64,000 nucleotides of DNA, from assembly GCA_002269645.1 (NCBI GenBank), contig NIVC01000581.1:124001-188000 (forward strand), read 5' to 3'. Below, one piece after another: positions 9,501 to 63,682 of the stretch. Origin of the DNA: Macrostomum lignano (Eukaryota). The notes below the pieces were generated by a model. That model saw only the letters and a list, made by a program, of their open reading frames with translations. It searched no databases and had not been told where the DNA came from. Position numbers and translations under genes: made by a program. Every line of letters starts with the position of its first letter. Position 1 is the first letter of the stretch.

Positions 9501-10600
9501 CCCACCTGTTCGGGTCGTCACCCGATGCAGCCCCGGCGGTGTCGGTGGGTCCCGGCCGCGCCATCCCCGTCAAGCAGGGCGTGTTGGCCAAGCGCTGCAC
9601 TGGCGGTATCTCCTCCGAGTGGCGCCGCAAATTCGTCACCCTGGGCGAGGACGGCCGCCTCACCTACTACGCCAGCCTCCACGAGTACATGGAGAACGGC
9701 CGCGGCCGCTGCGTGGACCTCGGCCAGGCCACCGTCCGCCTGCAGGACCACCCGCACCACCACCACAAGCGCGGAAAGTCCGGCGGTTCCGGCAGCGAGG
9801 CCGCCGGATTCGAACTCGTGACCTTGGACGGCCGGGTCCGCCAGTTCGAGGCGCCCAACCGCGACGTCCGCGACGCCTGGGTGACCGCCCTGCGCGCCGC
9901 CACCCTCGGCCGCCTGCGCGCTGGCCGCGACGGCGACGTTGATGGAAACGACGCTGCCGCTCTGCTGGACGCGGCCCGCCGGTTGCCAGGCAACGAGCGC
10001 TGCGCGGACTGCGGCGCCCCGCAGCCAGACTGGGCCAGCGTCAGCCTCGGCCTCCTCATCTGCCTGCGCTGCAGCGGCGCCCACCGCCAGCTCGGCACCC
10101 ACCTGAGCCGCGTCCGCTCGCTGCACCTGGACTCCTGGACCACCGGCCACGCCTTGCCGCTCAGCGTCGTTGGCAACGCGCTTGGCAACGGTGTCTGGGA
10201 GGCGCGCCTGCCGCCGGGCGCTCGGCCGTCTCCAGACGCGGACAGCGCCGAGTGGGAGGCCTTCGCCCGCGCCAAATACGAGCGCGGCGACTTCCTGCCC
10301 GAGGCCGCGCGGCCTTCCGACCTCGCCGACGCCGCTGCTTCCGGCGACACCCGCCGACTGCTGGCCGCGCTGGCCCGCGCCAGCCCCGCCGACCTGGACG
10401 CCGTCCCCGCCGACCCCAGCCGCCTGCCGCCGCTGCACGCCTGCGCTGCCGCGGGCAGCCGCGCCCACCTCCAGCTGCTACTGTGGCGCGGCGCGAGCCC
10501 CGGCGCCAGAGACCGGCGCGGCCGCACGGCAAGCGACTGCGCCAGGGCGGCGGGCCACGCGGACTGCGAGAAACTCCTGCGGCTGGCCTGCAGCTCCTGA
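6593..10600 (+). CDS. AGAP: AGAP/centaurin-gamma-type ArfGAP (PH + ArfGAP + ankyrin) with a low-complexity N-terminus; 6 exons
   Basis: Exons 6593-7177, 7482-7565, 7830-8039, 8353-8463, 8562-8642 and 9464-10600, all GT-AG and phase 0. The last exon has the AGAP PH start GRAIPVKQG..KR....EWRRKFVTL, the ArfGAP zinc finger CADC-x16-CLRCSGAHR and ANK-like repeats. The last exon is secure; the N-terminal exons are less so. Confidence 0.85.
7351..7458. repeat. 36-bp unit x3 in AGAP intron 1
   Basis: CATATTTACTGATGCACAGTGACACACAACTATCAT repeated three times. Confidence 0.9.
8685..9190. repeat. 21/22-bp minisatellite in AGAP intron 5 (CCACCCTGTCTCTTGTCTGTC)
   Basis: More than 20 units. Confidence 0.95.
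9250..9425. repeat. Degenerate 10-bp repeat (CTAATCATCT) in AGAP intron 5
   Basis: Visible tandem units. Confidence 0.8.
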
Positions 10601-12329: not shown

Positions 12330-13590
12330 TTGGCTTCGGGATTCAGGATTGGCTTCAGGACTGGCTTCAGGACTGGCTTCAGGATTGGCTTCAGGATTGG
12401 CTTCAGGATTGGCTTCAGGGTTAGCTTCAGGATTGGCTTCAAGGTTAGCTTCAGGATTGGCTTCAGGATTGGCTTCAGGATTGGCTTCAGGATTGGCTTC
12501 AGGACTGGCTTCAGGATTGGCTTCAGGATTGGCTTCAGGATTGGCTTCAGGGTTAGCTTCAGGATTGGCTTCAAGGTTAGCTTCAGGATTGGCTTCAGGA
12601 TTGGCTTCAGGATTGGCTTCAGGATTGGCTTCAGGACTGGCTTCAGGATTGGCTTCAGGACTGGCTTCAGGATTGGCTTCAGGGTTAGCTTCAGGATTGG
12701 CTTCAAGGTTAGCTTCAGGATTGGCTTCAGGATTGGCTTCAGGATTGGCTTCAGGATTGGTTTCAGGATTGGCTTCAGGATTGGCTTCAGGATTGGCTTC
12801 AGGATTGGTTTCAGGATTGGCTTCAGGATTGGCTTCAGGATTGGCTTCAGGGTTAGCTTCAGGATTGGCTTCAAGGTTAGCTTCAGGATTGGCTTCAGGA
12901 TTGGCTTCAGGATTGGCTTCAGGATTGGCTTCAGGACTGGCTTCAGGATTGGCTTCAGGATTGGCTTCAGGATTGGCTTCAGGATTGGCTTCAGAATTGG
13001 CTTCAGGACTGGCTTCAGGATTAGTTTCAGGATTAGCTTCAGGATTGGCTTCAGGACTGGCTTCAGGATTGGTTTCAGGATTAGCTTCAGGACTGGCTTC
13101 AGGGTTGGCTTCAGGACTGGCTTCAGGATTGGCTTCAGGACTGGCTTCAGGATTGGCTTCAGGACTGGCTTCAGGATTGGTTTCAGGATTAGCTTCAGGA
13201 CTGGCTTCAGGGTTGGCTTCAGGACTGGCTTCAGGATTGGCTTCAGGACTGATTTCAGGATTGGCTTCAGGTTTGGCTTCAGGATTGGCTTCAGGGTTGG
13301 CTTCAGGATTGGCTTCAGGATTGGCTTCATGATTGGCTTTAGGACTGGCTTCAGGATTGGCTTCAGGATTGGCTTCAGGACTGGCTTCAGGATTGGCTTC
13401 AGGATTGGTTTTTAGGATTAGATTCAGGATTGGCTTCAGGGTTAGCTTCAGGATTCGCTTCAGGTTTGGCTTCAGGGTTAGCTTCAGGATTGGTTTTAGG
13501 ATTGGCTTCAGGATTGGCTTCAGGGTTGGCTTCAGGGTTAGCTTCAGGATTGGTTTCAGGTTTGTTTTCAGGATTGGCTTCAGGGTTTTA
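12330..13590. repeat. 12-bp minisatellite, about 100 copies (GGATTGGCTTCA)
   Basis: Source of the GLAS/FRIG/KPIL ORFs; recurring variant blocks. Confidence 0.95.
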
Positions 13591-13800: not shown

Positions 13801-16088
13801 AAGCAGGGTCCCACCAGTTTGATTCAACTTCAAGATCACAGTGATCCCAGCTAACTGCAGCAGGGTCCCACCAGTTTGATTCAACTTCAAGATCGCCGTG
13901 ATCCCAGCTAACTGCAGCAGGGTCCCACCAGTTTGATTCAACTTCAAGATCGCCGTGATCCCAGCTAACTGCAGCAGGGTCCCACCAGTTTGATTCAACT
14001 TCAAGATCGCCGTGATCCCAGCTAACTGCAGCAGGGTCCCACCAGTTTGATTCAACTTCAAGATCGCCGTGATCCCAGCTAACTGCAGCAGGGTCCCACC
14101 AGTTTGATTCAACTTCAAGATCACAGTGATCCCAGCTAACTGCAGCAGGGTCCCACCAGTTTGATTCAACTTCAAGATCACAGTGATCCCAGCTAACTGC
14201 AGCAGGGTCCCACCAGTTTGATTCAACTTCAAGATCACAGTGATCCCAGCTAACTGCAGCAGGGTCCCACCAGTTTGATTCAACTTCAAGATCGCCGTGA
14301 TCCCAGCTAACTGCAGCAGGGTCCCACCAGTTTGATTCAACTTCAAGATCGCCGTGATCCCAGCTAACTGCAGCAGGGTCCCACCAGTTTGATTCAACTT
14401 CAAGATCGCCGTGATCCCAGCTAACTGCAGCAGGGTCCCACCAGTTTGATTCAACTTCAAGATCACAGTGATCCCAGCTAACTGCAGCAGGGTCCCACCA
14501 GTTTGATTCAACTTCAAGATCGCCGTGATCCCAGCTAACTGCAGCAGGGTCCCACCAGTTTGATTCAACTTCAAGATCACAGTGATCCCAGCTAACTGCA
14601 GCAGGGTCCCACCAGTTTGATTCAACTTCAAGATCACAGTGATCCCAGCTAACTGCAGCAGGGTCCCACCAGTTTGATTCAACTTCAAGATCACAGTGAT
14701 CCCAGCTAACTGCAGCAGGGTCCCACCAGTTTGATTCAACTTCAAGATCGCCGTGATCCCAGCTAACTGCAGCAGGGTCCCACCAGTTTGATTCAACTTC
14801 AAGATCACAGTGATCCCAGCTAACTGCAGCAGGGTCCCACCAGTTTGATTCAACTTCAAGATCGCCGTGATCCCAGCTAACTGCAGCAGGGTCCCACCAG
14901 TTTGATTCAACTTCAAGATCACAGTGATCCCAGCTAACTGCAGCAGGGTCCCACCAGTTTGATTCAACTTCAAGATCACAGTGATCCCAGCTAACTGCAG
15001 CAGGGTCCCACCAGTTTGATTCAACTTCAAGATCACAGTGATCCCAGCTAACTGCAGCAGGGTCCCACCAGTTTGATTCAACTTCAAGATCGCCGTGATC
15101 CCAGCTAACTGCAGCAGGGTCCCACCAGTTTGATTCAACTTCAAGATCGCCGTGATCCCAGCTAACTGCAGCAGGGTCCCACCAGTTTGATTCAACTTCA
15201 AGATCGCCGTGATCCCAGCTAACTGCAGCAGGGTCCCACCAGTTTGATTCAACTTCAAGATCACAGTGATCCCAGCTAACTGCAGCAGGGTCCCACCAGT
15301 TTGATTCAACTTCAAGATCGCCGTGATCCCAGCTAACTGCAGCAGGGTCCCACCAGTTTGATTCAACTTCAAGATCACAGTGATCCCAGCTAACTGCAGC
15401 AGGGTCCCACCAGTTTGATTCAACTTCAAGATCACAGTGATCCCAGCTAACTGCAGCAGGGTCCCACCAGTTTGATTCAACTTCAAGATCACAGTGATCC
15501 CAGCTAACTGCAGCAGGGTCCCACCAGTTTGATTCAACTTCAAGATCGCCGTGATCCCAGCTAACTGCAGCAGGGTCCCACCAGTTTGATTCAACTTCAA
15601 GATCACAGTGATCCCAGCTAACTGCAGCAGGGTCCCACCAGTTTGATTCAACTTCAAGATCGCCGTGATCCCAGCTAACTGCAGCAGGGTCCCACCAGTT
15701 TGATTCAACTTCAAGATCACAGTGATCCCAGCTAACTGCAGCAGGGTCCCACCAGTTTGATTCAACTTCAAGATCACAGTGATCCCAGCTAACTGCAGCA
15801 GGGTCCCACCAGTTTGATTCAACTTCAAGATCACAGTGATCCCAGCTAACTGCAGCAGGGTCCCACCAGTTTGATTCAACTTCAAGATCGCCGTGATCCC
15901 AGCTAACTGCAGCAGGGTCCCACCAGTTTGATTCAACTTCAAGATCGCCGTGATCCCAGCTAACTGCAGCAGGGTCCCACCAGTTTGATTCAACTTCAAG
16001 ATCGCCGTGATCCCAGCTAACTGCAGCAGGGTCCCACCAGTTTGATTCAACTTCAAGATCACAGTGATCCCAGCTAACTGCAGCAGGG
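13801..16088. repeat. 57-bp minisatellite, about 40 copies, derived from retrotransposon integrase coding sequence
   Basis: The minus-strand unit translates to DPAAVSWDH(G/C)DLEVESNWW and is contiguous and in frame with integrase HHCC ...CGRCKSV. Confidence 0.95.
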
Positions 16089-16680
16089 TCGACCGACTTG
16101 CAGCGGCCGCAGCTGTCAACCACCCGCTCCACATCCTGACGCTGTACTTGGCCGTCCAGGAAGCTTAGTCTGGCAAAGTACAGTGTCTTATCCACGCCGA
16201 AGTGATGTTACTCATGGCATTTCTTGATGTCTTCGTCGATAGGGAGCAGCCCGATCGCACACTGAGGCCCCTGGCGCAACCACTTGCTGCGGCACCCGTG
16301 TGAGTGCGTCGGCCTTATTTAGCGAGGACACCTCTGGCGACGTCTAATTCCAAGCCTCACCCCTGCCGTGTCGCGGATCAGTGCCAGCCGTCTTCTTGCC
16401 AGAGATTCACCCAGACCCTTGACTCTGATGGGTTTCTTGCCGGCGATCAACGATCGGATCCAGCCGTACACGGTCGCCGAGTCAGTCACGATTTCCACTC
16501 TCTTCGTGCCCCAGCCGATTGCTAGGTTGAGCCCCTTGATGATCGCTTTGAGTTCAGCCAAGTTTATGTCGTCTGGCTTACGTAGCCACGAGGCGTCTTC
16601 AGCGATGACACCACGTTTACTTCTAGGCACGCACCGATCGCTCTGCTGCTGGCGTCGCACCATGCCATGTCGGAGTTGTG
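16030..16680 (-). mobile_element. Decayed LTR-retrotransposon pol fragment: RNase H followed by the integrase HHCC zinc finger (RH-INT order as in Ty3/Gypsy or BEL/Pao)
   Basis: Across frameshifts: WCDASS...EDASWLRK..INLAEL.A..KG.NLA..WG...VEIVTDS...NKADALTRVP (D-E-D-D), then CHE*HHFGVDKTLYFAR...CGRC. Several frameshifts and one stop; the catalytic core is missing. Confidence 0.85.
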
Positions 16681-17067
16681 GTTAGAATTGCTAAGAATTT
16701 CTTCCAGATTGATTATTTTTATTTCAGCTTCATTCTGAGGATATTCGTAACGGAATTGGTAATTTTGGTAGTACTTGGTGTCTGCAGTCTTGTTCAAATA
16801 GGCTCTGCTCCACTCCTTTTAGCTCCATGTCCGACTCCACATGATTCATAAAGCCGAAACAGCGACTTGCGAATCAGTGTTTGTCCCAGATAGCATCGTA
16901 TACATATAACTATATTTGTCACTTCACAGATTTGTGCGTGCACTACTACTAGGACCATAATAAAGGAGTAAAAATTGAAGAAATAATAAGACAAATTTTA
17001 CAAGTAAATTTACAAACACGAAAGATATAAATATCTTTTTCAAGACATCGATTTCCATCTTAGGCAT

Positions 17068-17192: not shown

Positions 17193-18581
17193 CTATCTCC
17201 GACGACGACGATCATTCTCCACGGTTGTTGTCGGAGTGGTTGTTGTTGGAGTGGTTGTTGTTGGAGTGGTTGTTGTCGGAGTGGTTGTTGTCGGAGTGGT
17301 TGTTGTCGGAGTGGTTGTTGTCGGAGTGGTTGTTGTCGGAGTGGTTGTTGTTGGAGTGGTTGTTGTTGGAGTGGTTGTTGTCGGAGTGGTTGTTGTCGGA
17401 GTGGTTGTTGTCGGAGTGGTTGTTGTCGGAGTGGTTGTTGTCGGAGTGGTTGTTGTCGGAGTGGTTGTTGTCGGAGTGGTTGTTGTCGGAGTGGTTGTTG
17501 TCGGAGTGGTTGTTGTTGGAGTGGTTGTTGTCGGAGTGGTTGTTGTCGGAGTGGTTGTTGTCGGAGTGGTTGTTGTCGGAGTGGTTGTTGTCGGAGTGGT
17601 TGTGGTCGGAGTGGTTGTTGTTGGAGTAATTGTTGTCGGAGTGGTTGTTGTCGGAGAAGTTGAGGTTGGAGTGGTTGTTGTCGGAGTGGTTGTTGTCGGA
17701 GTGGTTGTTGTCGGAGTGGTTGTGGTCGGAGTGGTTGTTGTTGGAGTAATTGTTGTCGGAGTGGTTGTTGTCGGAGAAGTTGAGGTTGGAGTGGTTGTTG
17801 TCGGAGTGGTTGTAGTCGGAGTGGTTGTTGTCAGAGTGGTTACTGTCGGAGTGGTTGTAGTCGGAGTGGTTGAAGTCGGAGTGGTTGTAGTCGCAGTGAT
17901 TGTAGTCGGAGTGGTTGTCGGAGTGGTTGCTGTCGGAGTGGTTGTAGTCGGAGTGGTTGCTGTCGGAGTGGTTGTCGGAGTGGTTGTGGTCGGAGTGGTT
18001 GTCGGAGTGGTTGTGGTCGGAGTGGTTGTGGTCGGAGTGGTTGTGGTCGGAGTGGTTGTGGTCGGAGTGGTTGTGGTCGGAGTGGTTGTGGTCGGAGTGG
18101 TTGTGGTCGGAGTGGTTGTGTCGGAGTGGTTGTGGTCGGAGTGGTTGTGGTCAGAGTGGTTTTGGTCGGAGAAGTAGTTATTTGGGTGGCAATTGTAGTT
18201 GGCAGTTTTTTCACGGACGCCCCAGAAGCTGCTGTGGTTCCTTGGTCTCCTGCAGTCCAGTTCGAGCTCCTGATGTGGCTGACGCAGCCAGGTGCCGCAG
18301 ACTCCACAAACAGAGCTCCCAGCTGCTCAGCGGTACCGAAGTAGCACGCGGAGTCCCGTTGCAAAGCTCTGTGCAGCACGGAGCAGCTGATGGCGGAGGC
18401 GCACTCAGCAAAGCAGGCCCGAGGGTCTCGAACGCCTTCGAGGCGTCTCAGCTTAGCGAGGCTGGAGTTGCCAGATGGGCACCGGGCCGCCCGGTGGAAC
18501 GCAACCTTTGCTGCCGATGGCTGAGCCTCTGGCTACGGACAGCGCGATGAGCAGGAAGATGAGACAAGCCTTAGAGATCAT
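17193..18581 (-). CDS. Secreted mucin-like protein: signal peptide + Cys-rich PAN/apple-like domain + about 320-aa Thr/Pro-rich stalk (two compensating 1-nt frameshifts)
   Basis: MISKACLIFLLIALSVARG signal; a +1 shift at AAA (about 18508) gives FHRAARCPSG...RACFAECASAISCS...ACYFG...GC; a -1 shift at about 18120 gives (TTTTP)n ending VENDRRRRR*. The span of 1389 nt is divisible by 3. Acceptor-like site before the ATG; AATAAA downstream. Confidence 0.7.
17221..18180. repeat. 15-bp coding tandem repeat (GTTGTCGGAGTGGTT; TTTTP on the minus strand)
   Basis: About 60 units with codon-level variants. Confidence 0.9.
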
Positions 18582-29892: not shown

Positions 29893-32800
29893 TCACGTAC
29901 AGGCGGCCTGAGGCTGCCGAAGACTCGCGCAGGCAGGCGAAGGGTCCGCAGTGGCCGACTCGCGAGGCATCGGCTCTGAGTCAGCGGGCACCGGCTCAGC
30001 GGGCACCGGCTCAGCAGATACCGGCTCAGCAGATACTGGCTCAGCGGGCACCGGCTCAGCAGATACTGGCTCAGCGGGCACCGGCTCAGCAGATACCGGC
30101 TCAGCGGGCACCGGCTCAGCGGGCACCAGCTCAGCGGGCACCGGCTCAGCAGACACTGACTCAGCAGGCACCGGCTCAGCGGGCACCAACTCAGCAGATA
30201 CCGGCTCAGCGGGCACCGGCTCAGCAGATACCGGCTCAGCGGGCACCGGCTCAGCGGGCACCAACTCAGCAGATACCGGCTCAGCGGGCACCGGCTCAGC
30301 GGGCACCGGCTCAGCAGGCACCGGCTCAGCGGGCACAAACCCAGAAGTCGCGGACTCCGCCGGTTGCGAGTCTCCAGCCGATGTCTCAGGGCCAATCCTG
30401 GCATAGAACAGCAGGTAGGCCTCCGCGTTCAGCGCCTGAGCCTCTGAGGCGGGAGACACGTGCGAGTCGCTGATGTGGTACCAGCGGCCGGACTGGGCGC
30501 ACACGTAGGCGGTGTAGTGACCGCCGGCCAGGCTGCCGGAGTGCTCAACAATTGAGCAGAGCTGGAAATCAATCAGCTGGCCGGAAGCAACAGCGAGGCG
30601 CAGCAGCAGCGGGCAGCGGATGTGGCTGCCCGACTTGCGCAGCTGGCGACCCTGCTGGGCGAAGCGCTTCAACTGCAGCGTCAGCAGCCGCGGCGGCTGG
30701 TCGATGAGCAGCCGCTTGCTGTGATCAGTGGAGGCGCCGCAGCCTTCGCAGCGAACCCGGTTGCCAGCGGTGAGCAACTCGGCGGCAGTGAACTGGAACA
30801 GGCAGTGCTCCAGCGTGCCAGGTGGGGGCAACGGCTCTGACCGCAAAGGCTGCGACGCTGACGGAGGCGCTTTAGTCGAAGCCTTATTGTCTGTCTCCTC
30901 GGGTTCGCTGCTGTCCGCCAGGCAGCCCTCCAGCGTGTCCGTGCGGTTCAGCAGCTCCGGCGTGCCGGACTCCGCCTCCATGCCGGAGTCCACGTCGCTG
31001 CGAGCGTCCTGGACAGCTTTCTCTTTTGAAGCATCCTGCTGAGCCTCCTTCACCACCGACTCCTCAGCTGCCGGCTTCTCTACACCCGCCTCCTTCATCT
31101 CCAACTCCTCATCTGCCGGCTTCTCTGCACCCGCCTCCTTCATCTCCAACTCCTCAGCTGCCAGCTTCTCCGCACCCGCCTCCTTCATCTCCGACTCCTC
31201 AGCTGCCGGCTTCTCTACACCCGCCTCCTTCATCTCCAACTCCTCATCTGCCGGCTTCTCTGCACCCGCCTCCTTCATCTCCAACTCCTCAGCTGCCAGC
31301 TTCTCCGCACCCGCCTCCTTCATCTCCGACTCCTCAGCTGCCGGCTTCTCTGCACCCGCCTCCTTCATCTCCGACTCCTCAGCTGCCGGCTTCTCCGCAC
31401 CCGCCTCCTTCATCTCCGACTCCTCAGCTGCCGGCTTCTCTGAACCCGCCTCCTTCATCTCCGACTCCTCAGCTGCCGGCTTCTCCGCACCTTTGCCCGC
31501 GCTCCCGTCGGCCTTGTCGGGATTCTCAACGGCGCGGGAGTCCAGCTCCGCCTTCTCAATCTCAGGCTCGTCCGCCTTATCACCCAGGGTGAGGCTTTCC
31601 AGCTTCTTCTCCGCCTCCATCTCGTCCAGCCGGCCCTTCTCAATCTGCTGCTGCCGCTGCTGCTTGGCCGCGCGCTTCTGCTGCTTTTTGGTGAGCCGCT
31701 GCTGGCGCCGGTTCTTCTCCCGCAGATGCTTCGGGTCGGGGGTCCTGGCTGTGGACGAAGTCGAAGGCGACACAGAGCGCGGCGCCGCCGAAGGCCGGTG
31801 GTGGACGGTCTCGGTGATGGGCAGCATGAGGTCCTGGAATATCTCTGGCGTACGGGACGCCCTGCCGCACTGCAGGCAGACCAGCTCGGAGACCAGGCGG
31901 CCGGAGAACTCGGCGTCAATCACCGTGCTGTCCCTGGCGCTGTGGTTGAGGGCGCGAGCTCGATCCCGTAGCTCCTGCGGCACCTGCAGTGACGGAGAAG
32001 GTAAAATATGCTGAGTCATGAGTTCAACGGGCTTGGGTGCTCCGTACCGCTCAATAAGTATGGAAAGGGAAACTGCAGCTTGGGAAACACCGCTGCAAAA
32101 ATTGCCCTCATCCTGACATGGTGAGGATGATGTCATGATGTGACATGGTGAGGATGATGTGACATGGTGAGGATGATGTGACAAGGTGAGGGATGATATG
32201 ACATGGTGAGGGATCATGTGACATGGTGAGGATGATGTGACATGGTGAGGATGATGTGACATGGTGAGGAATGATGTGACATGGTGAGGATGATGTGACA
32301 TGGTGAGGATGATGTGACATGGTGAGGGATCATGTGACATGGTGAGGATGATGTGACATGGTGAGGGATCATGTGACATGGTGAGGATGATGTGACAAGG
32401 TGAGGGATGATATGACATGGTGAGGGATCATGTGACATGGTGAGGATGATGTGACATGGTGAGGATGATGTGACATGGTGAGGAATGATGTGACATGGTG
32501 AGGATGATGTGACATGGTGAGGATGATGTGACATGGTGAGGGATCATGTGACATGGTGAGGATGATGTGACATGGTGAGGGATCATGTGACATGGTGAGG
32601 ATGATGTGACATGGTGAGGGATCATGTGACATGGTGAGGGATCATGTGACATGGTGAGGATCATGTGACATGGTGAGGATGATGTGACATGGTGAGGGAT
32701 CATGTGACATGGTGAGGATCATGTGACATGGTGAGGATGATGTGACATGGTGAGGGATGATGTGACATGGTGAGGATGATGTGACATGGTGAGGGATCAT

Positions 32801-34003
32801 GTGACATGGTGAGGGATTATGTGACATGGTGAGGATCATGTGACATGGTGAGGATGATGTGACATGGTGAGGGATCATGTGACATGGTGAGGGATCATGT
32901 GACATGGTGAGGATGATGTGACATGGTGAGCAGGTGGCTCATCAGCTTTTGCTTTTGCAATTCGTGATCCCCACAGGCACAAAAAGCAACTCATTTAGCG
33001 CAGACTATGAATTCGGGGAGACTCACCTGCTTGGGATCGGAGCCCTTGCCGAGTCCCAGGCTGGCCAGGATGGCCGTCTGGATGCGCCGCACCTCCTCGG
33101 TCTTGGAGGCGTCCAGCAGCGTCCTCAGCAGCTCGTGCGCGTCCTGCTGCTGGCGGCCCCGGAAGCGGGGGTTCCGCTCCATCACCTGGCCGAGCAGGTC
33201 GGACGGCCGGTGTGGCGCCTGCTGGCCGCTGCGGATGGCCGCCAGGGAGGCCGCCAAGCACTTCGTGGTCCGGCCGGCTGGCTCGGTGAGGCGCAGCCGC
33301 AGCGGCTCGGCTCCGGCCGGCAGCGTCAGCTCGCCAGAGGCGGCGACCGCGTGCTGTGCGAGCAGATCGGCCAGGCCGGGCAGGTGGGCGAGGCACTGCA
33401 GGATGGAGTTGAAGAAGCAGGTGTTGCCCAGGTTCGACAAGCCGCGGCACTCCCGCCCGGCGGCGGCGGAGACAGCACGACGCCCGTCAGCAGCGGCGGC
33501 AGCCGGCAGGGCGGCCAAGCGGTCGGCGTGGCAGCGCAGCAGGTTGCAGGCGGTGGCGAACTCGCCGGAGCCGCTGGTGGGCAGTTCGCGGTCGCAGACG
33601 TAGCACCAGGCCTGGGGAGGCAGCAGGATGGAGCAGAGCAGTCAGGGAGGGCGTCTTAAAAATTTCTATGCGCCCAGACCGACGGAGAAAAAATGGCGTC
33701 ACTTACCTGCAGCTGGTCCATCGACACAGCGACCGGATGACTGGCTGTTTTGAAGTGCTTCAGCGCCTGTCGGCAGTCGGTGTAGCGGCCGCAGCCTGTG
33801 GCGGCGCAGCGCAGGCAGAGCCAGAGCCCGCCGGTGGCGCCGCCAGCGCAGCCGTCACAAACCGGCCTGCACGGCTGCGCGTCCGCCGTGCCGCCGAGCT
33901 GGCGGAGCGTCTTGCGGACCGCGGCCAGGTCCACCCCGGCTTGGAGGTGCGGGCAGCGGCCGCCGCCAGCCGGTGCTGCTGACTGGCGCTTCTTTTTTGG
34001 CAT
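29893..34003 (-). CDS. USP16: Ubiquitin-specific protease USP16/USP45 family (ZnF-UBP + USP domain); 3 exons, about 990 aa
   Basis: Exons 34003-33707, 33611-33027 and 31983-29893 (phase 0, 0). ZnF-UBP CPHL...WLCLRC...GCGR...A.KHF...H; Cys box GLSNLGNTCFFNS; QQDAHELL; His box HSGSLAGGHYTAYV; WYHISDS. USP16 versus USP45 not resolvable by eye. Confidence 0.9.
29980..30336 (-). repeat. 15-bp coding repeat (EPVPA/EPVSA, about 24 copies) in the USP C-terminus
   Basis: In frame within ORF 29893..32418. Confidence 0.9.
31058..31490 (-). repeat. 45-bp coding repeat (EMKEAGAEKPAAEES, about 9-10 copies) inside the USP catalytic-domain insertion
   Basis: In frame between QDLMLPI and the TLEHCL/LLTAGN region. 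Confidence 0.9.
32112..32930. repeat. 19/20-bp array (TGACATGGTGAGG(G)ATCATG / ATGATG), USP intron 2
   Basis: About 40 units. Confidence 0.95.
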
Positions 34004-34404
34004 TGCGGGTGGGGCTGCAAGAGACGCATTGAGGCTGGCTTATTACTGATGTCGCGACTTTCTTAGTCATTTCTTTATTCAACTTCACTCGTCCCTGTTT
34101 ACTCTGTTCTTTCTCTCTCTGCCTAGTTCAATCTTGCTATTCTTATCTCTCTCTCCCTCGCCGCCTTCTGATTGGCTCTCCATTCTCGCCTCTCTCTTTA
34201 GTCGCGCACTCCACCCCTCTCTTTACGAGTATTATTCTGGGCTCAACCCCCCTCCTTAAGTTAGTTTTATGAATACATTGGTTTGGGCCCTGCGCCCACT
34301 TACTGCTCCTTTCAGTGTTACAATTCAATTCAACTCTTATTTAAATATTCTTTAGTTTAGATCTATTCCTCTCTTTACAACTGATGACATCGTGCGGCTT
34401 CGTG

Positions 34405-36225
34405 TGACATGGTGAGGGATTATATAACATGCTGAGGATGATGTGACACGGTGAGGGATCATGTGACATGGTGAGGGATCATGTGACATGGTAAGGGATC
34501 ATGTGACATGGTGAGGATGATGTGACAAGGTGAGGGATCATGTGACATGGTGAGGGATCATGTGACATGGTGAGGATGATGTGACACGGTGAAGGATCAT
34601 GTGACATGGTGAGGGATCATGTGACATGGTGAGGATCATGTGACATGGTGAGGATCATGTGACATGGTGAGGATGATGTGACATGGTGAGGGATCATGTG
34701 ACATGGTGAGGATCATGTGACATGGTGAGGGATCATGTGACATGGTGAGGATCATGTGACATGGTGAGGATGATGTGACATGGTGAGGGATCATGTGACA
34801 TGGTGAGGGATCATGTGACATGGTGAGGGATCATGTGACATGGTGAGGATGATGTGACATGGTGAGGATGATGTGACATGGTGAGGATCATGTGACATGG
34901 TGAGGATGATGTGACATGGTGAGGATCATGTGACATGGTGAGGGATCATGTGACATGGTGAGGGATCATGTGACATGGTGAGGGATCATGTGACATGGTG
35001 AGGATGATGTGACATGGTGAGGGATCATGTGACATGGTGAGGGATCATGTGACATGGTGAGGGATCATGTGACATGGTGAGGATCATGTGACATGGTGAG
35101 GATGATGTGACATGGTGAGGGATCATGTGACATGGTGAGGGATCATGTGACATGGTGAGGGATCATGTGACATGGTGAGGGATCATGTGACATGGTGAGG
35201 GATCATGTGACATGGTGAGGATCATGTGACATGGTGAGGATGATGTGACATGGTGAGGGATCATGTGACATGGTGAGGGATCATGTGACATGGTGAGGGA
35301 TCATGTGACATGGTGAGGATCATGTGACATGGTGAGGATGATGTGACATGGTGAGGGATCATGTGACATGGTGAGGGATCATGTGACATGGTGAGGATCA
35401 TGTGACATGGTGAGGATCATGTGACATGGTGAGGGATCATGTGACATGGTGAGGGATCATGTGACATGGTGAGGGATCATGTGACATGGTGAGGATGATG
35501 TGACATGGTGAGGATGATGTGACATGGTGAGGGATCATGTGACATGGTGAGGGATCATGTGACATGGTGAGGATCATGTGACATGGTGAGGATGATGTGA
35601 CATGGTGAGGATGATGTGACATGGTGAGGATCATGTGACATGGTGAGGATGATGTGACATGGTGAGGATCATGTGACATGGTGAGGATGATGTGATATGG
35701 TGAGGGATCATGTGACATGGTGAGGGATCATGTGACATGGTGAGGATCATGTGACATGGTGAGGATGATGTGACATGGTGAGGGATCATGTGACATGGTG
35801 AGGGATCATGTGACATGGTGAGGATCATGTGACATGGTGAGGATGATGTGACATGGTGAGGGATCATGTGACATGGTGAGGGATCATGTGACATGGTGAG
35901 GGATCATGTGACATGGTGAGGATCATGTGACATGGTGAGGATGATGTGACATGGTGAGGGATCATGTGACATGGTGAGGGATCATGTGACATGGTGAGGA
36001 TCATGTGACATGGTGAGGGATCATGTGACATGGTGAGGGATCATGTGACATGGTGAGGGATCATGTGACATGGTGAGGGATCATGTGACATGGTGAGGAT
36101 CATGTGACATGGTGAGGATGATGTGACATGGTGAGGATGATGTGACATGGTGAGGGATCATGTGACATGGTGAGGATCATGTGACATGGTGAGGATGATG
36201 TGACATGGTGAGGGATCATGTGACG
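34405..36225. repeat. 19/20-bp array of the same family as 32112-32930, upstream of USP
   Basis: About 90 units; same orientation and variants. Confidence 0.95.
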
Positions 36226-40804: not shown

Positions 40805-41972
40805 ATGAGCTACACGCTAAGGCAGGCAGAGCAGCACGAGCTGAGCAGGCGGGACCTGCGCCAGCTGGCGTTTCTGCCCTACGACTACACAGCGCACCGG
40901 GTGGCTCTGGGCTACGCCAGGCACTGGGCGATTCTGGTCTTGGCCCTGGCGGCGACGGCGGCCGCCCAGCTGGCCTGGGGCTGCTCACTGCTGTCAGCCG
41001 GGGTGGCCGCCTGCGTGCCGCTCTACGCCTAAGCGCATAGCCGGGCCTTCGACTGGCTGGTCATCCAGCGCGGCCAGCCGGACTACTGGGACTTCGCCGC
41101 CGCCTGGCGCCTGCCGCACCGCGTCTACGTGGCAGAGTGCGATAGCAGCAGTGAGCACTCCTACAGGCCAATATTGAGCACTTATCTCTAGAAGGGTGCA
41201 AGGCATTTTCTAAAGGGAATGTCACGGACACTCAGTGAGATGTCAGTCCCGTACATCTGAGCCCAGTATCAGCCGAGACAGCATGGGAAGGATTGGCAGA
41301 TCGGTAGCATTGGAGAGAGCAGAGACAGTGAGTACACTGCAGTGATCGCTGGGTGGTTTCATCGATTCTGTGTGGGCATAACGGATATCAGGGGTGTCAA
41401 CAATCTCTATATGGTTCAGAGGACCGCTGGGGTGTTAAGAGAGCTTCAGTTGGGTGTCAGTGGCTTTTGGAGGTTGTCAGCGATATCTAAATGTGTCGCG
41501 CATCACCATAGCGATGTCAGAGTTCTCTCCATCACTAATGCAGCAGAGCCTGCACCCCTTGCACCTGAGTGACACCATGACCTGCAGACCCTATTTTGTC
41601 ACCCCCCACCCAGAGCGGCTGATCGGCGTGGTCTGCCTGCAGCACCAGCCAGACGGAAGCTGCGACCTGCAGCACGCTGCCGTGGTGGCCAGCCGTCGCC
41701 GCGGAGGAGTCGGCAGCGGGCTGGTGCGGCTGGCGCTAACGGAGGCTGGCCGGCTGGGCTACAGCAGGGTGACCATGTACAGCACAACAGTGCAGGCGGC
41801 AGCGGTGGCCATGTACAAGCGGCTGGGGATCGGGGTGGACCGCGTGCACAGCGTCGGAGTCAGCAAGCGAATTCCCTTCCTGCCGAAGCCGTTCGCCTAC
41901 GTGCGCATGAGCGCGGAGCTGGGCAAGCAAGGGGGACTCGAATGCCTGCCCGAATCGCACAAGGACTGCTAG
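40805..41972 (+). CDS. NAT8/camello-like GNAT N-acetyltransferase with a hydrophobic segment; interrupted by an in-frame TAA at 41030-41032
   Basis: Exon 40805-41150 (phase 1, GTGAGC) joins exon 41614-41972. Acetyl-CoA motif RRRGGVGSGL, MYSTTVQAAAVAMYKRLG. The frame stays open after the TAA (AHSRAFDW...VYVAE). Confidence 0.7.
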
Positions 41973-45451: not shown

Positions 45452-47647
45452 TCAGACAGGCCGCTGGAACTCGCTGGCCGGCTTCAGTGGCAGCAGTTCG
45501 CCAAAGTAGAAGTGCTGGATGATGGGGAACTTTGCCAGAATCTCCGCCTTGTACATCTTCACCAGGCCGGAGTTCACCTTGTCCCAGGAGTACACCCCGC
45601 TGATGCCGTGCAGCGTGCTGGAGTGCTCCTCGAAGGGACCGGACTTCACCTGCGGTTGGAGAGGAGCAGTGAGTTAGAGGCGACTCACTGTGTGCTGCGG
45701 TGGGGATTCCCAGTGTTCTGCAGTGGGGATTCCCAGTGTGCTGCGGTGGGGATTCCCAGTGTGCTGCGGTGGGGATTCCCAGTGTGCTGCGGTGGGGATT
45801 CCCAGTGTGCTGCGGTGGGGATTCCCAGTGTGCTGCGGTGGGGATTCCCAGTGTGCTGCGGTGGGGATTCCCAGTGTGCTGCGGTGGGGATTCCCAGTGT
45901 GCTGCGGTGGGGATTCCCAGTGTTCTGCAGTGGGGATTCCCAGTGTGCTGCGGTGGGGATTCCCAGTGTTCTGCAGTGGGGATTCCCAGTGTGCTGCAGT
46001 GGGGATCCCCAGTGTGCTGCGGTGGGGATTCCCAGTGTGCTGCAGTGGGGATTCCCAGTGTGCTGCAGTGGGGATTCCCAGCCCAGTCTTCCGCAGTGGG
46101 GATTCTCAGTGTGCTGCGGTGGGGATTCCCAGTGTGCTGCGGTGTGGATTCCCAGTGTGCTGCGGTGGAGATTCCCAGTGTTCTGCAGTGGGGATCCCCA
46201 GTGTGCTGCGGTGGGGATCCCCAGTGTTCTGCAGTGGGGATTCCCAGTGTGCTGCGGTGGGGATCCCCAGTGTTCTGCAGTGGGGATTCCCAGTGTGCTA
46301 CGGTGGGGATCCCCAGTGTTCTGCAGTGGGGATTCTCAGTGCGCTGCAGTGGGGATCCCAAGTGCGCTGCAGTGTGTCACCTTGAATATGTAGTCGAGGC
46401 AGCCGAAGAAGAGGTTCTCCTTGGCCAGCTGCTCCGCCTTGCTCCTGTTGGGAATGTCGGCCGGCTGCACCTTTGGATTGCCGATCAGCTGCGCGCTGCC
46501 CCAGATGAAGGGCACGAACTGGAAGTCGTCCAAGCACCAGACTCCGTGGCTGCCAGCCGGCTCCATGCGGTAGGTCACCTGGCATGAGCGGGAATGCAAA
46601 CCATCCGGCATGTAGAAGGTAGAAAATCCTTGCATACTAATCTAAGCCTACGATTAAACCTTAAGTCCGAACGGGCCCTCAGAAGCAACTGAAGTCAGCA
46701 CCAATCAGCCAGATTCCCAGATCCCAGCTTCTGCATCCAGTCACAGATCCCAGCTTCTGCATCCGCAACACCGCAGATCCCAGCTTCTGCATCCGCAACA
46801 CCGCAGATCCCAGCTTCTGCATCCACAGTCACAGATCCCAGCTTCTGCATCCGCAACACCGCAGATCCCAGCTTCTGCTTCCAGTCACAGATCCCAGCTT
46901 CTGCATCCACAGTCACAGATCCCAGCTTCTGCATCCGCAACGCCGCAGATCCCAGCTTCTGCATCCAGTCACAGATCCCAGCTTCTGCATCCGCAACGCC
47001 GCAGATCCCAGCTTCTGCATCCACAGCCGCAGATCCCAGCTTCTGCATCCACAGCCGCAGATCCCAGCCTCTGCTCCAGCATCCGCACTCATAGCTCCCA
47101 AAACGCTCACCTGCAAACGCCGCACCAGGTCCAGGTAGCGGGCAAACACGGAGAGCGCAACAGCGGCGCAGTCGGCGGTGACGAGGAAGCCCGACTTGAA
47201 CAGGCAGCAGATGAAGGCCACAAAGGCCAGCTCATGGCCGGTGCCGTAGTCGATGCGGGTGCCGTTGCCAAACGATTCGACAAAGTAGCGGACGAGCTCG
47301 GCGCGCCGCTGCTCCGACAGATCCTGGCTGAGGCCGTCGGCCAGGCAGTCGGCCAGCAGGCCGGGCGCCTCGGACTCGAGCCGCTGCAGCCAGGTCTTGA
47401 AGGCGCGGTTGCCGAACCTGGCCGGCTGCTCTACCGGCGGAATCTCGTCAATCCAGGAGTCCAGCTTGGCCAGCAGGGAGTTGAGGCGGCCGCAGCGCTC
47501 GGACACAGAGTAGCTGTCCGGGCCGGCCTGCAGCGGCTTGCCCCGCACCGAGCTACTCACTGCCGCGATGAAGCCCAGAATCTCCTGGTAGGCCAGCGAC
47601 CGCTCCCAGTCGCGCATGTTGGCTGGTGACCGCACGAGCTTCTCCAT
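45452..47647 (-). CDS. PTPA: PP2A phosphatase activator (PTPA/PPP2R4); 3 exons, about 310 aa
   Basis: Exons 47647-47111, 46578-46381 and 45649-45452 (phase 0, 0). Motifs [60 protein letters not shown]. Confidence 0.95.
45685..46375. repeat. 23-bp array (GGGGATTCCCAGTGTGCTGCGGT), PTPA intron 2
   Basis: About 30 units. Confidence 0.95.
46705..47080. repeat. 28/30-bp array with core CAGATCCCAGCTTCTGCATCC, PTPA intron 1
   Basis: About 13 units. Confidence 0.9.
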
Positions 47648-49159: not shown

Positions 49160-52100
49160 TCACCAGCCGCTGAAGTCGCTCAGCTGGCTCGTGTCCTTCA
49201 CAGAGCGGGGCTTCTTGGGCGGCCCCGAATCCGGCTGAGCCTGCGGGACTTGCCGCTTGCCCTGCTGCTGCTTCTGCAGCTGGCGCAGGTTGAGGAACTG
49301 CCCGACGCCGGTGCCGAAGGCCTTCTTCGGCTGCGAGGTCACCGCGGGAGTCGCCGAGGTGGTGGCGGCGGACTGCGAGGAAGCGGGAGCGGCTGCAGAG
49401 GCGATAGCGGCCCGCTCAGAGGCCAGAGCTGCGTCCACCTGCTCGAAGGGGTCCACGAACACCTGCGAATATCGGCGTGGTGCGGGGGGCGGGGTGAGGA
49501 GACTCCAGCCACAACCGCCTTTACTTACTGATTTCACAGTTTGCGCCCTCAGAACAGATTCAGCAAAAATATCACAAGTAACCAAAATAAAGCTGGCATT
49601 TCACTGAGCTCTGCAGCCAAGAATACAAGTACATCCGCACTCAGTGACCTGAGCTCTGCAGCCAAGAATACAAGTACATCCGCACTCAGTGACCCGAGCT
49701 CTGCAGCCAAGAATACAAGTACATCCGCACTCAGTGACCTGAGCTCTGCAGCCAAGAATACAAGTACATCCGCACTCAGTGACCCGAGCTCTGCAGCCAA
49801 GAATACAAGTACATCCGCACTCACTGACCCGAGCTCTGCAGCCAAGAATACAAGTACATCCGCACTCAGTGACCTGAGCTCTGCAGCCAAGAATACAAGT
49901 ACATCCGCACTCAGTGACCTGAGCTCTGCAGCCAAGAATACAAGTACATCCGCACTCAGTGACCCGAGCTCTGCAGCCAAGAATACAAGTACATCCGCAC
50001 TCACTGACCCGAGCTCTGCAGCCAAGAATACAAGTACATCCGCACTCAGTGACCTGAGCTCTGCAGCCAAGAATACAAGTACATCCGCACTCAGTGACCT
50101 GAGCTCTGCAGCCAAGAATACAAGTACATCCGCACTCAGTGACCCGAGCTCTGCAGCCAAGAATACAAGTACATCCGCACTCACTGACCCGAGCTCTGCA
50201 GCCAAGAATACAAGTACATCCGCACTCAGTGACCTGAGCTCTGCAGCCAAGAATATAAGTACATCCGCACTCAGTGACCTGAGCTCTGCAGCCAAGAATA
50301 CAAGTACATCCGCACTCAGTGACCTGAGCTCTGCAGCCAAGAATACAAGTACATCCGCACTCAGTGACCTGAGCTCTGCAGCCAAGAATACAAGTACATC
50401 CGCACTCAGTGACCTGATTTCTGCAGCCAAGAATACAAGTACATCCGCACTCAGTGACCTGAGCTCTGCAGCCAAGAATACAAGTACATCCGCACTCAGT
50501 GACCTTTGCTCTGCAGCAAAGAATAAAAGTACATCCGCAATGTAATTAATTAACAATTTCATTCTGACGTGTTGGGGGGTTGTCGCTGACTATTGACTGG
50601 CTAGATATTAAACTGACTCACTTTGTGCCCTACTTACCCTGCATAGCGTCCACCCCACTCATGCGTACATCAATGCGCACATAGCGTACTTTCAAATCTA
50701 ACTTTTATCAATAACTCAAATATCGTTTTATACCACTACGTATTTAAATAACTGAATCTAGCTTTTCTTTGTTGTAATATTTACTCAGCAAATATATCAG
50801 TTCGCTGCATTATTGTTCAAATTAAACAAGCCTTGTCTGCGTCGCGTCACATCCTGCAGCCAAATCACTGAACTCTGCAGCCAAGAATAAAAGTACATCC
50901 GCACTCAGTGACTCGAACTCTGCATCCAGGAATAAAAGTACATCCGCACTCAGTGACTGAGCTCTTCAGCCAAGAATAAAAGCTTACCTGGGCACTGAGA
51001 ATTCGCACGTCCTCAATCGGCCGGTCATTCTTGTCAACCTCAACGGTCTCGATTCGGTCCAGCGTGTCCGAGCCGCCGACCAGTCGGCCGAACACGGTGT
51101 GCCGCCTGTCCAGATGCCGACAGGACCTGTAGGTGATGAAGAACTGGCTGCGGTTCGAGTTCGGGCCCGAGTTCGCCATGCTCAGCACGCCGCGGCTGTC
51201 GTGATTGAGAAACGGGCGCAGCTCGTCGCGGATGGAGCCGCCCCAGGCGCTCTCACCGCCCGAGCCCGTGCCGGTGGGGTCGCCGCCCTGCAGCACGAAA
51301 TGGCGCACGGATCTGGGAGTGACAGTCCGGGAGTGACGGAGTGGCATGAATTTCAAGTCGTGACGCTTTTAGAATTAATCTGATCGAATCTTCACCAGAT
51401 AAGTTTTTATCCGGGTGTCCAAGACTGAGATTTGAGCTCGCGATAGGCCAGAGCCGCTGAGCCAGGACCTCAGCCACGGACACACGGATTCAAAGTTCTA
51501 TCAAATGATCAGTACGCCGCACTTTTGCGCGCACACTCGAGATCTGCTTCAAATTCATTTTTTTCAACTCGTTAGTAGGCCGGGCTATTTTTAATATGCG
51601 ACTGACACAATAATTCATCTTATTAAAGTCTTCACAATAAATGAAGCCCGCAAGTCTCACCTATGAAACACGGTGCCATTGTAGTAACCCTTGCGGCACA
51701 GAAGGATGAAATTCTCGCAAGTCTTCGGACAGTGCTCGCAGTCCAGCTCCAGGTTCAGCTGGCCGAAGTTGGTCTCCAGGCGGACGTAGCCTTTTGTTTT
51801 GACCCGGGGGTACCTCACCTGGTCGTCATCGAGCCTGGCCGCTTCCAGGTGGGTCACTCGGTCCATTGTGGTGGAGGTGAAGCTAGCCGCCGCTGCGCCA
51901 GTTGAGTAATGAGCTGCATTGATGGTGTCATCTGCCTGCGGGAGGTCGGATTGAACTCACTGCTCAGCATGTCGCACTCAGCCCCTTGAACTCTGTATCC
52001 CATCTAAATCCCATCTGCTTGACCTCACATCCCCGTCCCACCGTCGCCTCACCTTCCTCCGCAGGCCGGCGCCCTCGGCAACATCGGGGCCGCGGAGCGC

Positions 52101-61170: not shown

Positions 61171-62784
61171 TCAGGTGTATAAGTAGGCGGAGGAGCCGTT
61201 GGCGCCTGGCTGGCGGCACAACAGCCGCATGACGCGGTCTGAGTTGGGCGGCCAGGCGGGCCGGCAGTAGCGCAGCGGCTGGCAGGCGAGCGCAGGCCGG
61301 AAGGCGGCCATGGCGGCCGGGTCAGGCGGCAGCAGCCGGTGCGGCTCGCCGTCACAGTCGGCCTCGGCCACGAAGGCAACAAAGGCGGCGGCCGGCACGC
61401 GGCGCATCTGGCAGACGCTGAGCAGCTGGGCGGGCAGGCCGGTCAGCAGGTTCGGTGGCTCCAGTTGCTGCACGGCGTCACCTGCCGCCCTGTGGGACAA
61501 TTTTGTATTGAGGCCTATTGCCTGAGTTTGTATTGAGTAACAAAGACCTGTCAATCACTCACTTGCCCTGTCCGAGCATGGCGCTGGACCGCAGGCAGCG
61601 CAGCAGGGGCCAACCAGAGAGGAGGCCGGCTCAGCCGACTGGAAGCTCGTCAGCGGCTGCGTGCCCAGCACCGCCAGATCCAGCGATTCGACGTCCAGCA
61701 CAGACAGCAGCAGCTCCACGAACTCGTGACAGTCGGCAGGAGGAACTGGGGCGGCGGCGTGGCAGACCAGCACCTGCGTGCGATGGGGAAACTGCGTCAC
61801 AGGCTGCACTGATCAGCTTCATCATCCACACCAATCAGCTCCATCACCCACACCAATCAGCTCCATCACCCACACCAATCAGCTCCATCACCCACACCAA
61901 TCAGCTCCATCACCCACACCAATCAGCTCCATCACCCACACCAATCAGCTCCATCACCCACACCAATCAGCTCCATCACCCACACCAATCAACTCCATCA
62001 CCCACACCAATCAGCTCCATCACCCACACCAATCAGCTCCATCACCCACACCAATCAGCTCCATCACCCACACCAATCAGCTTCATCACCCACACCAATC
62101 AGCTTCATCACCCACACCAATCAGCTTCATCACCCACACCAATCAGCTTCATCACCCACACCAATCAGCTTCATCACCCACACCAATCAGCTTCATCACC
62201 CACACCAATCAGCTCCATCACCCACACCAATCAGCTTCATCACCCACACCAATCAGCTTCATCACCCACACCAATCAGCATGAGTACGAGTGGTCGTTTG
62301 CGTACAGTATTGGCGCACTTTTATGTGTGTCTCAGCGCTGGTTGTGTGACATAGTGTGTCGCCAAAGGCGTTGCACCCTCCCACCAACCTGCGGGTTGCA
62401 CTTCAGCCGATACAAGAAGCAGCCAAAGTCCCCCAGCGCAGTCTGCCCCAGGCTGTTGGCCAGCCCAGCCTCCGGGAAGCCACAGCTGATGAGGCCCAGA
62501 ATCTCAGCGTCATCGCCCAGAACGCAGGCGGTTAGGAAGCCGCAGGCGGCGGGCCCGACGCCAACCAGCAGGGTGCTGCAGTCGAGGACCCGCCGGTCCC
62601 CAGCCGCCAGCTGCTGCCGAGCAGCGGGGCTGAGGCGCATCGCGCAGCTCCGGACATCGGAGGCCTTCAAACGGCCACTGTCGCCTCCTTGATCCTCGCC
62701 GCCGTCCCAGTCGGAGTCCTCGGAGTCGTCAACGGCGCGGGAGAACTCAGGCAGCCGCTTGGGAAACGGGCCGTCGGCGGCCAT
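61171..62784 (-). CDS. PSMG1: Proteasome assembly chaperone 1 (PAC1); 3 exons, one 1-nt frameshift
   Basis: Exons 62784-62389, 61773-61563 and 61489-61171. Motifs CSTLLVGVG..A.GFL, FLYRLKCNPQV.VC, PLLRCL (after adding a C at 61606-61609), LEPPNLLTGLPAQLLSVCQ, AFRP.L and C-terminal YLYT match PSMG1 as recalled. Confidence 0.85.
61810..62280. repeat. 22-bp array (CCAATCAGCTYCATCACCCACA), PSMG1 intron 1
   Basis: About 21 units. Confidence 0.95.
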
Positions 62785-63682
62785 GGAGAAGCAAGAATTT
62801 GTGGCAACTGCGGCTTGGCGAGCAAAACTGAAGCGGTTTGTTCAGTGCAACTGCCATCAGCTCTGGTGTGAGATAAAGTCAAACGAATATTAATTGTACA
62901 GCAGTCTGTAAATTAACTTTGACAGCAGTCTGTAAGCTAATTTTGACAGCAGTTTGTAAACTAATCTTTATAGCACTCAGTAATAATTTTTACTAAAATA
63001 AATATAGGTTATAATTTTTAGCATATACAAATGGAAGGATTAAACTTTTTTTAAAATAAAAACCTCCTTACATAGTTACATTGTCATTGCTTCTTTTATG
63101 ATTCATAGATGACCCATCCCCCCCCCTAGTCCATTATGCTAAGCATGTAGCAGCCTAATTAGCATTAACTTAGTATGCTAGTGTGCCAAGTATGCCAGAC
63201 AAAATGCACTAGTGCACCAGGTGTGCCAGCAGTGAGTCTAAAATCTCTTAGCTGCTGACTCCAGTATTGATATAAACATTTATATAAATTTAATCCATCC
63301 CAGTCATTTTGTCCTCTGTCCAGTGCGTGCTCCCAATGCTTGAACGATTTCTTTATGCTATTTAAACTACCGTTTTGGGCTCTATCATTTTCATGCTCTT
63401 CCATCTCCTCTGTTTTCTTCTCCTTTTATGTTAAATTTGCATTGTTTTCGATTGACTACCAAGCCTATTTAGCCCAACCGCAAAGTTTATTAATTTTAGT
63501 TTAATTTCTTTATTGTAATTTAGCACCCCGGTATAGCTGCGAACCAATCTCTGTTGACAAATTAATTACCTTAACCCACCTGCTACTCATCATCAGACAC
63601 CTAGCCTTTTTTTGCTTGAATAATAATATTAATTACCATAATAAGTATGCCAATTAATTTTTTGTTGATCATTAAGCCATAG

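Follow-up and report, generated by a model that had tools for sequence, protein, structure and literature searches.

A young minisatellite in Macrostomum lignano, probably grown from the finger-to-core linker of a decayed retrotransposon integrase

How does a minisatellite begin, and can its parent sequence still be read at the place where it began? The question is raised by a 64,000-nt stretch of the Macrostomum lignano genome (GenBank assembly GCA_002269645.1, contig NIVC01000581.1, positions 124,001 to 188,000 of the forward strand; hereafter the window, with positions counted from its first letter), in which a tandem array abuts a fragment of a retrotransposon pol gene. The array extends over 13802-16090; Tandem Repeats Finder describes it as 40.2 copies of a 57-bp unit that match at 98% and contain no indels. 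The units stand head to tail, and their length lies inside the 10-100 bp range of minisatellites. A 27-mer taken from the unit occurs 40 times in the 64-kb window (0 expected), always within the array. On the minus strand, the frame runs ...HHFGVDKTLYFARLSFLDGQVQRQDVERVVDSCGRCKSV, then 40 times DPAAVSWDH(C/G)DLEVESNWW, then DPA/CSVLL and a stop codon. An initial annotation made from the letters had described about 40 copies of a 57-bp unit that continue the integrase motif CGRCKSV in frame and without a gap; Tandem Repeats Finder and the minus-strand reading confirm this description. The reading that we favour, with a probability of about 0.8, is that the array is a young, non-functional minisatellite, which began when 57 bp (19 codons) of a dead retrotransposon gene were locally duplicated in tandem and which later grew in steps.

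What was this segment before it was repeated? The answer comes from relatives of the adjoining transposable element (TE), compared as protein segments from other species. In their alignment (A1), all relatives long enough to cover this part have CxxCxS[IV], one DPAPVxWxxGxLxVxxNW and then xR[LV][AG]xD[VI]TH, the start of the DDE core; this finger-linker-core motif is found in 101 of the 182 collected relatives, and a second linker copy in none of them (0/101). The exact spacing seen in the window, DP-x15-W, recurs in 83 of the 101; among these 83, D1, P2, G10 and W18 are invariant, and the window unit carries all four, with further matches at L12 (88%), V14 (84%), A3 (77%) and W7 (73%). The unit spans 18 linker residues plus one variable residue and ends five codons short of the first catalytic Asp, and the order and spacing of CGRCKSV/DPAA... 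equal those of CxxCxS[IV]DPAP in the relatives. To judge from sequence, then, the 57-bp unit represents the linker that natively joins finger and core in this integrase, and it remains collinear with the flank. The alignment agrees with the earlier placement of the unit between the HHCC finger and the DDE core, and the proposal that the array was generated from its own flank is well supported by the single linker copy of the 83 relatives and by the match at all four invariant positions; at the protein level, relatives with the intact arrangement do contain the segment, as one DP-x15-W followed by the core.

The parent itself is a ~0.6-kb pseudogenised pol remnant that holds RNase H, the H2C2 finger and the linker (Table 1); as an integrase, the locus is a relic and not a gene. 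The H, H, C and C residues of the finger line up with invariant columns of the relatives, and the Integrase_H2C2 profile matches with E = 1.8e-4 and a score of 22.0, under the curated Pfam cut-off of 25.5. A detail missed by the initial annotation is that the flank is not an intact frame: one stop codon lies within the finger (16208-16210) and another, in frame, within the C-terminal piece of RNase H (16344-16346), and at least three frameshifts add to these two stops across ~0.6 kb. TE homology is restricted to ~16025-16686 (tblastn with 33 relatives); the fragment has lost both ends, and no array adjoins its 5' end (~16686). The DDE catalytic core (rve) is absent after the array and across the window, as is any match to it in tblastn with the 33 relatives and in six-frame profile hidden Markov models (HMMs), in line with the earlier statement that unrelated sequence follows the last copy; profile HMMs built from relatives for the integrase core and for reverse transcriptase (RT)/DUF7047 found zero matches in all six reading frames of the window (best E = 0.16, on the wrong strand and 10 kb off). 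The same tblastn and profile searches exclude a decayed DDE core or RT hidden past the neighbouring 12-mer and 15-mer arrays. Long terminal repeats (LTRs), gag and protease are likewise missing from the window; in no frame does the distal flank retain any similarity to unit or core, and the array flanks have no dispersed copies within the window, save for a (TATC)n microsatellite.

To which family did the element belong? A homology search yielded 33 relatives with 42-49% identity, including Hydra, Trichuris, Pomphorhynchus and crab proteins; their domains follow the order RVT_1, DUF7047, RNase H, H2C2, rve, and they match Peptidase_A17 (a Pao-type region) weakly, with E = 8e-4, under the cut-off. 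Because of this domain order and the Peptidase_A17 match, the parent is tentatively assigned to the BEL/Pao-like LTR retroelements. The family is large: a profile search retrieved 3,974 representative clusters, 533 of them with E <= 1e-30.

How did one linker become forty? The array contains exactly two unit alleles, TGT (Cys) in 21 copies and GGC (Gly) in 19, which differ by two linked changes within one codon; there are zero further substitutions across 2,280 bp. Position 10 is Gly in 83/83 relatives and Cys in 0/83; GGC is therefore ancestral and TGT derived. The unit next to the flank bears the derived Cys allele and is thus no pristine parent; the earlier claim that the parent sequence is still attached holds in the sense of collinearity with the finger. 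Outward from the flank, the alleles follow the order CGGGCCCGCGCCCG / CGGGCCCGCGCCCG / CGGGCCCGGGGC, a higher-order repeat (HOR) of 14 units (798 bp). Alleles 14 units apart match in 24 of 26 cases, a level that only 2 of 100,000 shuffles reached at any lag from 2 to 20 (permutation p = 2e-5), and the 14-unit block contains an 8+6 sub-pattern (lag-6 match 0.74, lag-8 match 0.69). Such a higher-order structure of two alleles is the signature of stepwise growth by repeated out-of-register exchange or multi-unit block duplication, after at least one mutation event, and it is the reason for reading the growth as multi-step, not as one event or a single burst. The whole layout can be written F-(ab)x40-a-Z, where a stands for the unit's first 9 nt and Z for sequence that lacks similarity to the unit or the core.

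The allele codon has some features of its own. The GGC/TGT substitutions fall at unit positions 28 and 30, 2 nt apart, and the intermediate allele is absent from the array; an imperfect palindrome with one mismatch, GATCGC-C-GTGATC, has become the perfect 13-nt GATCAC-A-GTGATC in the derived TGT allele. One of the two GGC to TGT changes looks like quasi-palindrome correction by template switching. A hairpin-prone unit as the cause of expansion was considered and rejected: single-stranded DNA of both alleles and both strands folds no better than shuffled sequences (z -0.57 to +0.03).

Table 1. Array, flanking retrotransposon fragment and neighbouring features of the window (a slash marks a junction or boundary; stop, stop codon; ORF, open reading frame).
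Feature	Positions	Strand	Basis or remark
RNase H N-terminal piece WCDASSRAIGACLEVN	16615..16662	-	frame differs from next piece; relatives have vWcDASSlAxGV there
RNase H core piece VIAEDASWLRKPDDINLAELKAIIKGLNLAIGWGTKRVEIVTDSATVYGWI...LARRRLALIRD	16370..16609	-	Pfam RVT_3 E = 1.8e-7, RNase_H E = 2.2e-4
RNase H C-terminal piece EAWN(stop)TSPEVSSLNKADALTRVPQQ	16284..16358	-	frameshift on either side; relatives have NKADxLTRVPxxWL there
Integrase H2C2 region WLRQ...KKCHE(stop)HHFGVDKTLYFAR...CGRCKSV	16091..16282	-	ends exactly at array start
Perfect 8-nt palindrome GGTC/GACC, codons S-V-D-P	16087..16094	.	direct reading of sequence
40 complete 57-bp units, 19 GGC and 21 TGT	13811..16090	-	homology to single-copy linker of 83 relatives
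HOR block 1, 14 units, allele string CGGGCCCGCGCCCG	15293..16090	-	100% identical to block 2
HOR block 2, 14 units	14495..15292	-	0 mismatches to block 1 over 798 bp
Partial HOR block 3, 12 units	13811..14494	-	4 nt (two allele switches) off block 2
Terminal partial unit GACCCTGCT, 9 nt	13802..13810	-	beyond it, sequence unrelated to unit or integrase core
Unit-unit junction			reads AACTGGTGG/GACCCTGCT
Array-less truncated junction			would read ...AACTGGTGG/GACCCTGCTTGTTCTG... (TGGTGG/GACCCTGCTTGTTCTG)
Neighbouring 12-mer array TTCAGGATTGGC x 103	12342-13584		open (PEAN)n-like tetrapeptide repeat on minus strand
Neighbouring 15-mer array x 64	17223-18171		
PH-ArfGAP-ankyrin ORF	9539-10600	+	ArfGap E = 4e-34
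GNAT acetyltransferase ORF	41454-41972	+	
C2H2 zinc-finger protein ORF, 650 aa	58808-60760	-	
PAC1 proteasome-assembly-chaperone piece	62335-62841	-	

In the course of events that we propose, the linker segment between the finger and the first catalytic Asp would have been duplicated in tandem locally; the array would then have grown to 40 copies via repeated out-of-register exchange or slippage of multi-unit blocks; and this growth would have left the 14-unit HOR, built from the ancestral Gly-GGC and derived Cys-TGT alleles. The retrotransposon would have been a chance substrate in a region of constant minisatellite formation, and the core beyond the array would most simply have been lost separately, in a deletion or rearrangement that had one of its breakpoints inside the array. 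The origin of the array is recognisable only because its substrate was coding sequence. A birth in frame, as the initial annotation put it, stands insofar as the frame is continuous; it is without demonstrated significance, since the array took over its open frame from the integrase ORF and 57 is a multiple of 3. The array with its alleles and HOR, the homology of the unit to the single-copy linker, the missing core and RT, the decayed flank and the array-rich setting are shown by the sequence; how the first duplication came about, whether truncation or expansion was earlier, and the lack of function are inferred.

Which came first, the array or the truncation? Three histories fit: (i) the array formed inside a longer fragment, and a later deletion with one breakpoint in the array removed the rest; (ii) truncation preceded the array, and the duplication was primed by a direct repeat that happened to lie at the new junction; or (iii) a single repair event did both, the proposal of the initial annotation that is taken up below. 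We favour the first: a 2.3-kb array is a large and probably recombinogenic target for deletion, and a distal end that lies 9 nt into the unit is equally consistent with a later deletion that broke inside the array. Several points weigh against the account that we prefer. The 9-nt partial unit at the distal end also suits a first duplication primed by microhomology where the element had already been truncated; that TE homology stops exactly with the array is a coincidence explained by the target-size argument alone; the perfect identity of the two 798-bp blocks could partly come from assembly or polishing; the single-unit state of intact elements is shown at the protein level and in other species; and the BEL/Pao assignment leans on the domain order of the relatives and on a sub-cut-off Peptidase_A17 match.

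The setting bears on how the array is to be explained, for it has much company. When blocks with a period of at least 7 are counted, 42 separate arrays (observed periods 10 to 86 bp) cover 39.4% of the window, with a median length of 496 bp and a median spacer of 687 bp; their units are mutually unrelated save for two pairs, and the 57-mer array is the longest. Simple and tandem repeats are reported to make up 15% of the M. lignano genome, and LTR retrotransposons 21% (PMC5730564); the tandem-repeat density of the window is far above the former figure. With 39% of the window taken up by 42 unrelated arrays, the birth of an array is nothing unusual in this region and is not tied to TE breakage.

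Could the array and the truncation nevertheless have a common cause, as the initial annotation proposed? A single repair event at a break in the linker, by template-switching or break-induced replication, by a rolling circle, or by slippage during end joining, might have removed the DDE core and made the array at once. It would account for TE homology that stops with the array and for the absence of any core remnant from the window; a distal end of arbitrary phase, 9 nt into the unit, is what aborted copying and ligation elsewhere would be expected to leave; and the proximal boundary, between 16090 and 16091, falls at the centre of the native palindrome GGTC/GACC, for which the chance is ~1 in 256 (an exactly centred 8-mer) and which is compatible with a break-based origin, suggestively so and no further. 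However, such an event could have made the first few copies at most, as the two-allele 14-unit HOR needs several rounds of mutation and block duplication; the 41 other arrays of the window, unrelated in sequence, show that arrays can arise here without TE breakage; the unit is not structure-prone (z -0.6 to 0); and the 5' end of the fragment was truncated without an adjoining array, so that truncation at this locus does not require array formation. No single event behind truncation and array alike is needed, and we consider one unlikely; in view of the HOR, the array-less 5' truncation, the 9-nt distal end and the 42 arrays, the claim of a common event is either unsupported or not decidable. 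A broader version, in which the array and the core loss come from one break-repair event and each of the 42 arrays is a past break healed by template-switching synthesis, strikes us as doubtful. If it were true, the TE-derived array would be the one case in which the pre-break sequence is known from relatives, and its breakpoints, its 9-nt terminal piece and its palindrome-centred boundary could reveal the repair mechanism directly.

Local duplication followed by stepwise growth also has to be set against explanations that place the array elsewhere, give it a role or dissolve part of it. Many satellites begin as short arrays in dispersed LTR elements (Ogre in Lathyrus; PMC7004042), and the array might be an internal variable-number tandem repeat of many (non-autonomous) TE copies, or a member of a dispersed 57-mer satellite family, and not specific to this locus. 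We regard this as improbable: the linker is duplicated in 0/101 relatives, an insert of 40 x 19 aa between finger and core would be expected to disable the integrase, and the unit is found nowhere else in the 64 kb; nor does the repeat occur in any protein of a 5.8-billion-sequence collection or the 27-mer, as an exact match, in metagenome contigs, two weak negatives, as both data sets are without M. lignano genomic DNA. Harder still to credit is an artefact of long-read assembly or polishing that would have inflated the copy number of an otherwise real array and smoothed it to its extreme homogeneity. Assemblies classically go wrong in tandem arrays, and 0 mismatches between two 798-bp blocks with only two unit alleles would suit such smoothing, which we nonetheless think very improbable, given an orderly two-allele mosaic with a nested 8+6 sub-structure typical of real HORs and other arrays in the same window that diverge normally (83-100%). 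Hardly credible, finally, is an exapted coding repeat, that is, an open 803-codon frame in a host gene for a Trp-rich, acidic 19-aa repeat protein. All 40 units do keep the frame open, and the sole polymorphism is non-synonymous (Gly/Cys); against this, a stop codon stands 39 codons upstream of the array, within the finger, a second minus-strand frame is open to the same extent (openness is not special), the 5.8-billion collection holds no homologous repeat protein, and synonymous variation is zero, hence there is no sign of purifying selection. On the evidence of the letters, no function is indicated for the array.

What else lies among the arrays? Uninterrupted host-gene-like ORFs sit between them (Table 1), which makes this array-dense region genic, not classical heterochromatin. 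Ten further non-array ORFs, screened with Pfam for other arrays that adjoin TE fragments, contained no TE domains, only the PAC1 host-gene piece, and the window holds no Rfam structured-RNA family. Many of the arrays are 93-100% homogeneous. A 19-20 bp unit, TGACATGGTGAGGGATCATG, is common to the arrays at 32135-32930 and 34385-36224, and a 45-mer, CTGAGCTCTGCAGCC..., to those at 49604-50539 and 50867-50982; 0.3-1.4 kb of non-repeat DNA parts the members of each pair, as if insertions or rearrangements had split single arrays. Periods that are multiples of 3 (for example 12, 15 five times, 21, 24, 27, 30, 33, 36, 45, 57) occur in about 20 of 41 arrays where one third would be expected, a weak excess that comes from a hand count with some ambiguous periods. 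A PTPA-like ORF at 46913-47647 (minus strand) is identical in 208 of 213 residues to an M. lignano PTPA gene model, non-conserved tail included; the Pfam PTPA match covers profile positions 2-173 of 293, after which the ORF reads through into a 28/56/84-bp minisatellite (46718-47087), and the UniRef M. lignano PTPA model (P0034, 299 aa) carries the identical read-through tail. The M. lignano gene model may be mis-annotated, or the ORF of the window may be a truncated paralogue.

What does the locus teach? It reveals no new mechanism or function. Its merit is that the birth of a minisatellite is clear here: a conserved coding parent with thousands of relatives shows the unit, the single-copy state and the ancestral allele, and the order of later events (the double substitution, the block duplications) can be partly reconstructed. 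In practical terms, the array can serve as a calibrated marker in studies of how minisatellites form, at a very high rate, in the M. lignano genome; that unrelated arrays saturate the 64 kb is arguably more remarkable than the 57-mer array taken alone. About 180 Mb of the assembly Mlig_3_7 lie in blocks that are at least 95% identical (PMC5730564), and such recently duplicated blocks may preserve the state before the array.

How does the locus compare with systems already described? One such system is the parent family itself: flank and unit align at 42-49% identity to the RNase H, finger and linker segments of a BEL/Pao-like pol, of which the window has only a decayed 0.6-kb internal piece, without RT, DDE core or LTRs, and thus the relic of an element, no longer an element. 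Satellites derived from LTR retrotransposons include the Ogre-derived FabTR of Lathyrus sativus and PisTR-A of pea (PMC7004042) and CRM1TR and CRM4TR of maize (PMC3648361). In these, as here, the monomer comes from one stretch of a single parental LTR retroelement that is recognisable beside the array (PMC7004042, PMC3648361), and expansion was local, via unequal exchange or conversion, with possible higher-order structure. Unlike the present unit, their monomers are non-coding (tandem repeats of the 3' untranslated region, or UTR, and the LTR-UTR junction), hundreds of bp long and mostly centromeric; the monomer in the window is 57 bp of pol coding sequence and belongs to an animal genome, where it lies in a region that contains genes and is known from a single locus. 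Coding parents are known as well: tandem repeats derived from TE ORFs include PROsat and Pvc20 (LINE-1 ORF2), HinfI (CR1 ORF2), E3900 (gag) and a CACTA transposase satellite (PMC9659126). These resemble the 57-mer in that the monomer comes from TE coding sequence, as tabulated in that review (PMC9659126), and differ from it in being established, multi-locus satellites with partial ORF similarity, whereas the present unit is a precise 19-codon block, collinear with the upstream coding flank, whose boundary and ancestral allele can be read. Human TE-derived minisatellites, of which ~7,276 have been reported and many stem from Alu and LTR elements, are similar in kind, namely short-unit arrays (10-100 bp) born by local duplication in inactive TE copies; the array described here has another host and another element, is unusually homogeneous and shows a clear higher-order period. 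TE-derived tandem repeats, ORF-derived ones included, are already well documented, and the M. lignano locus is a particularly legible further case.

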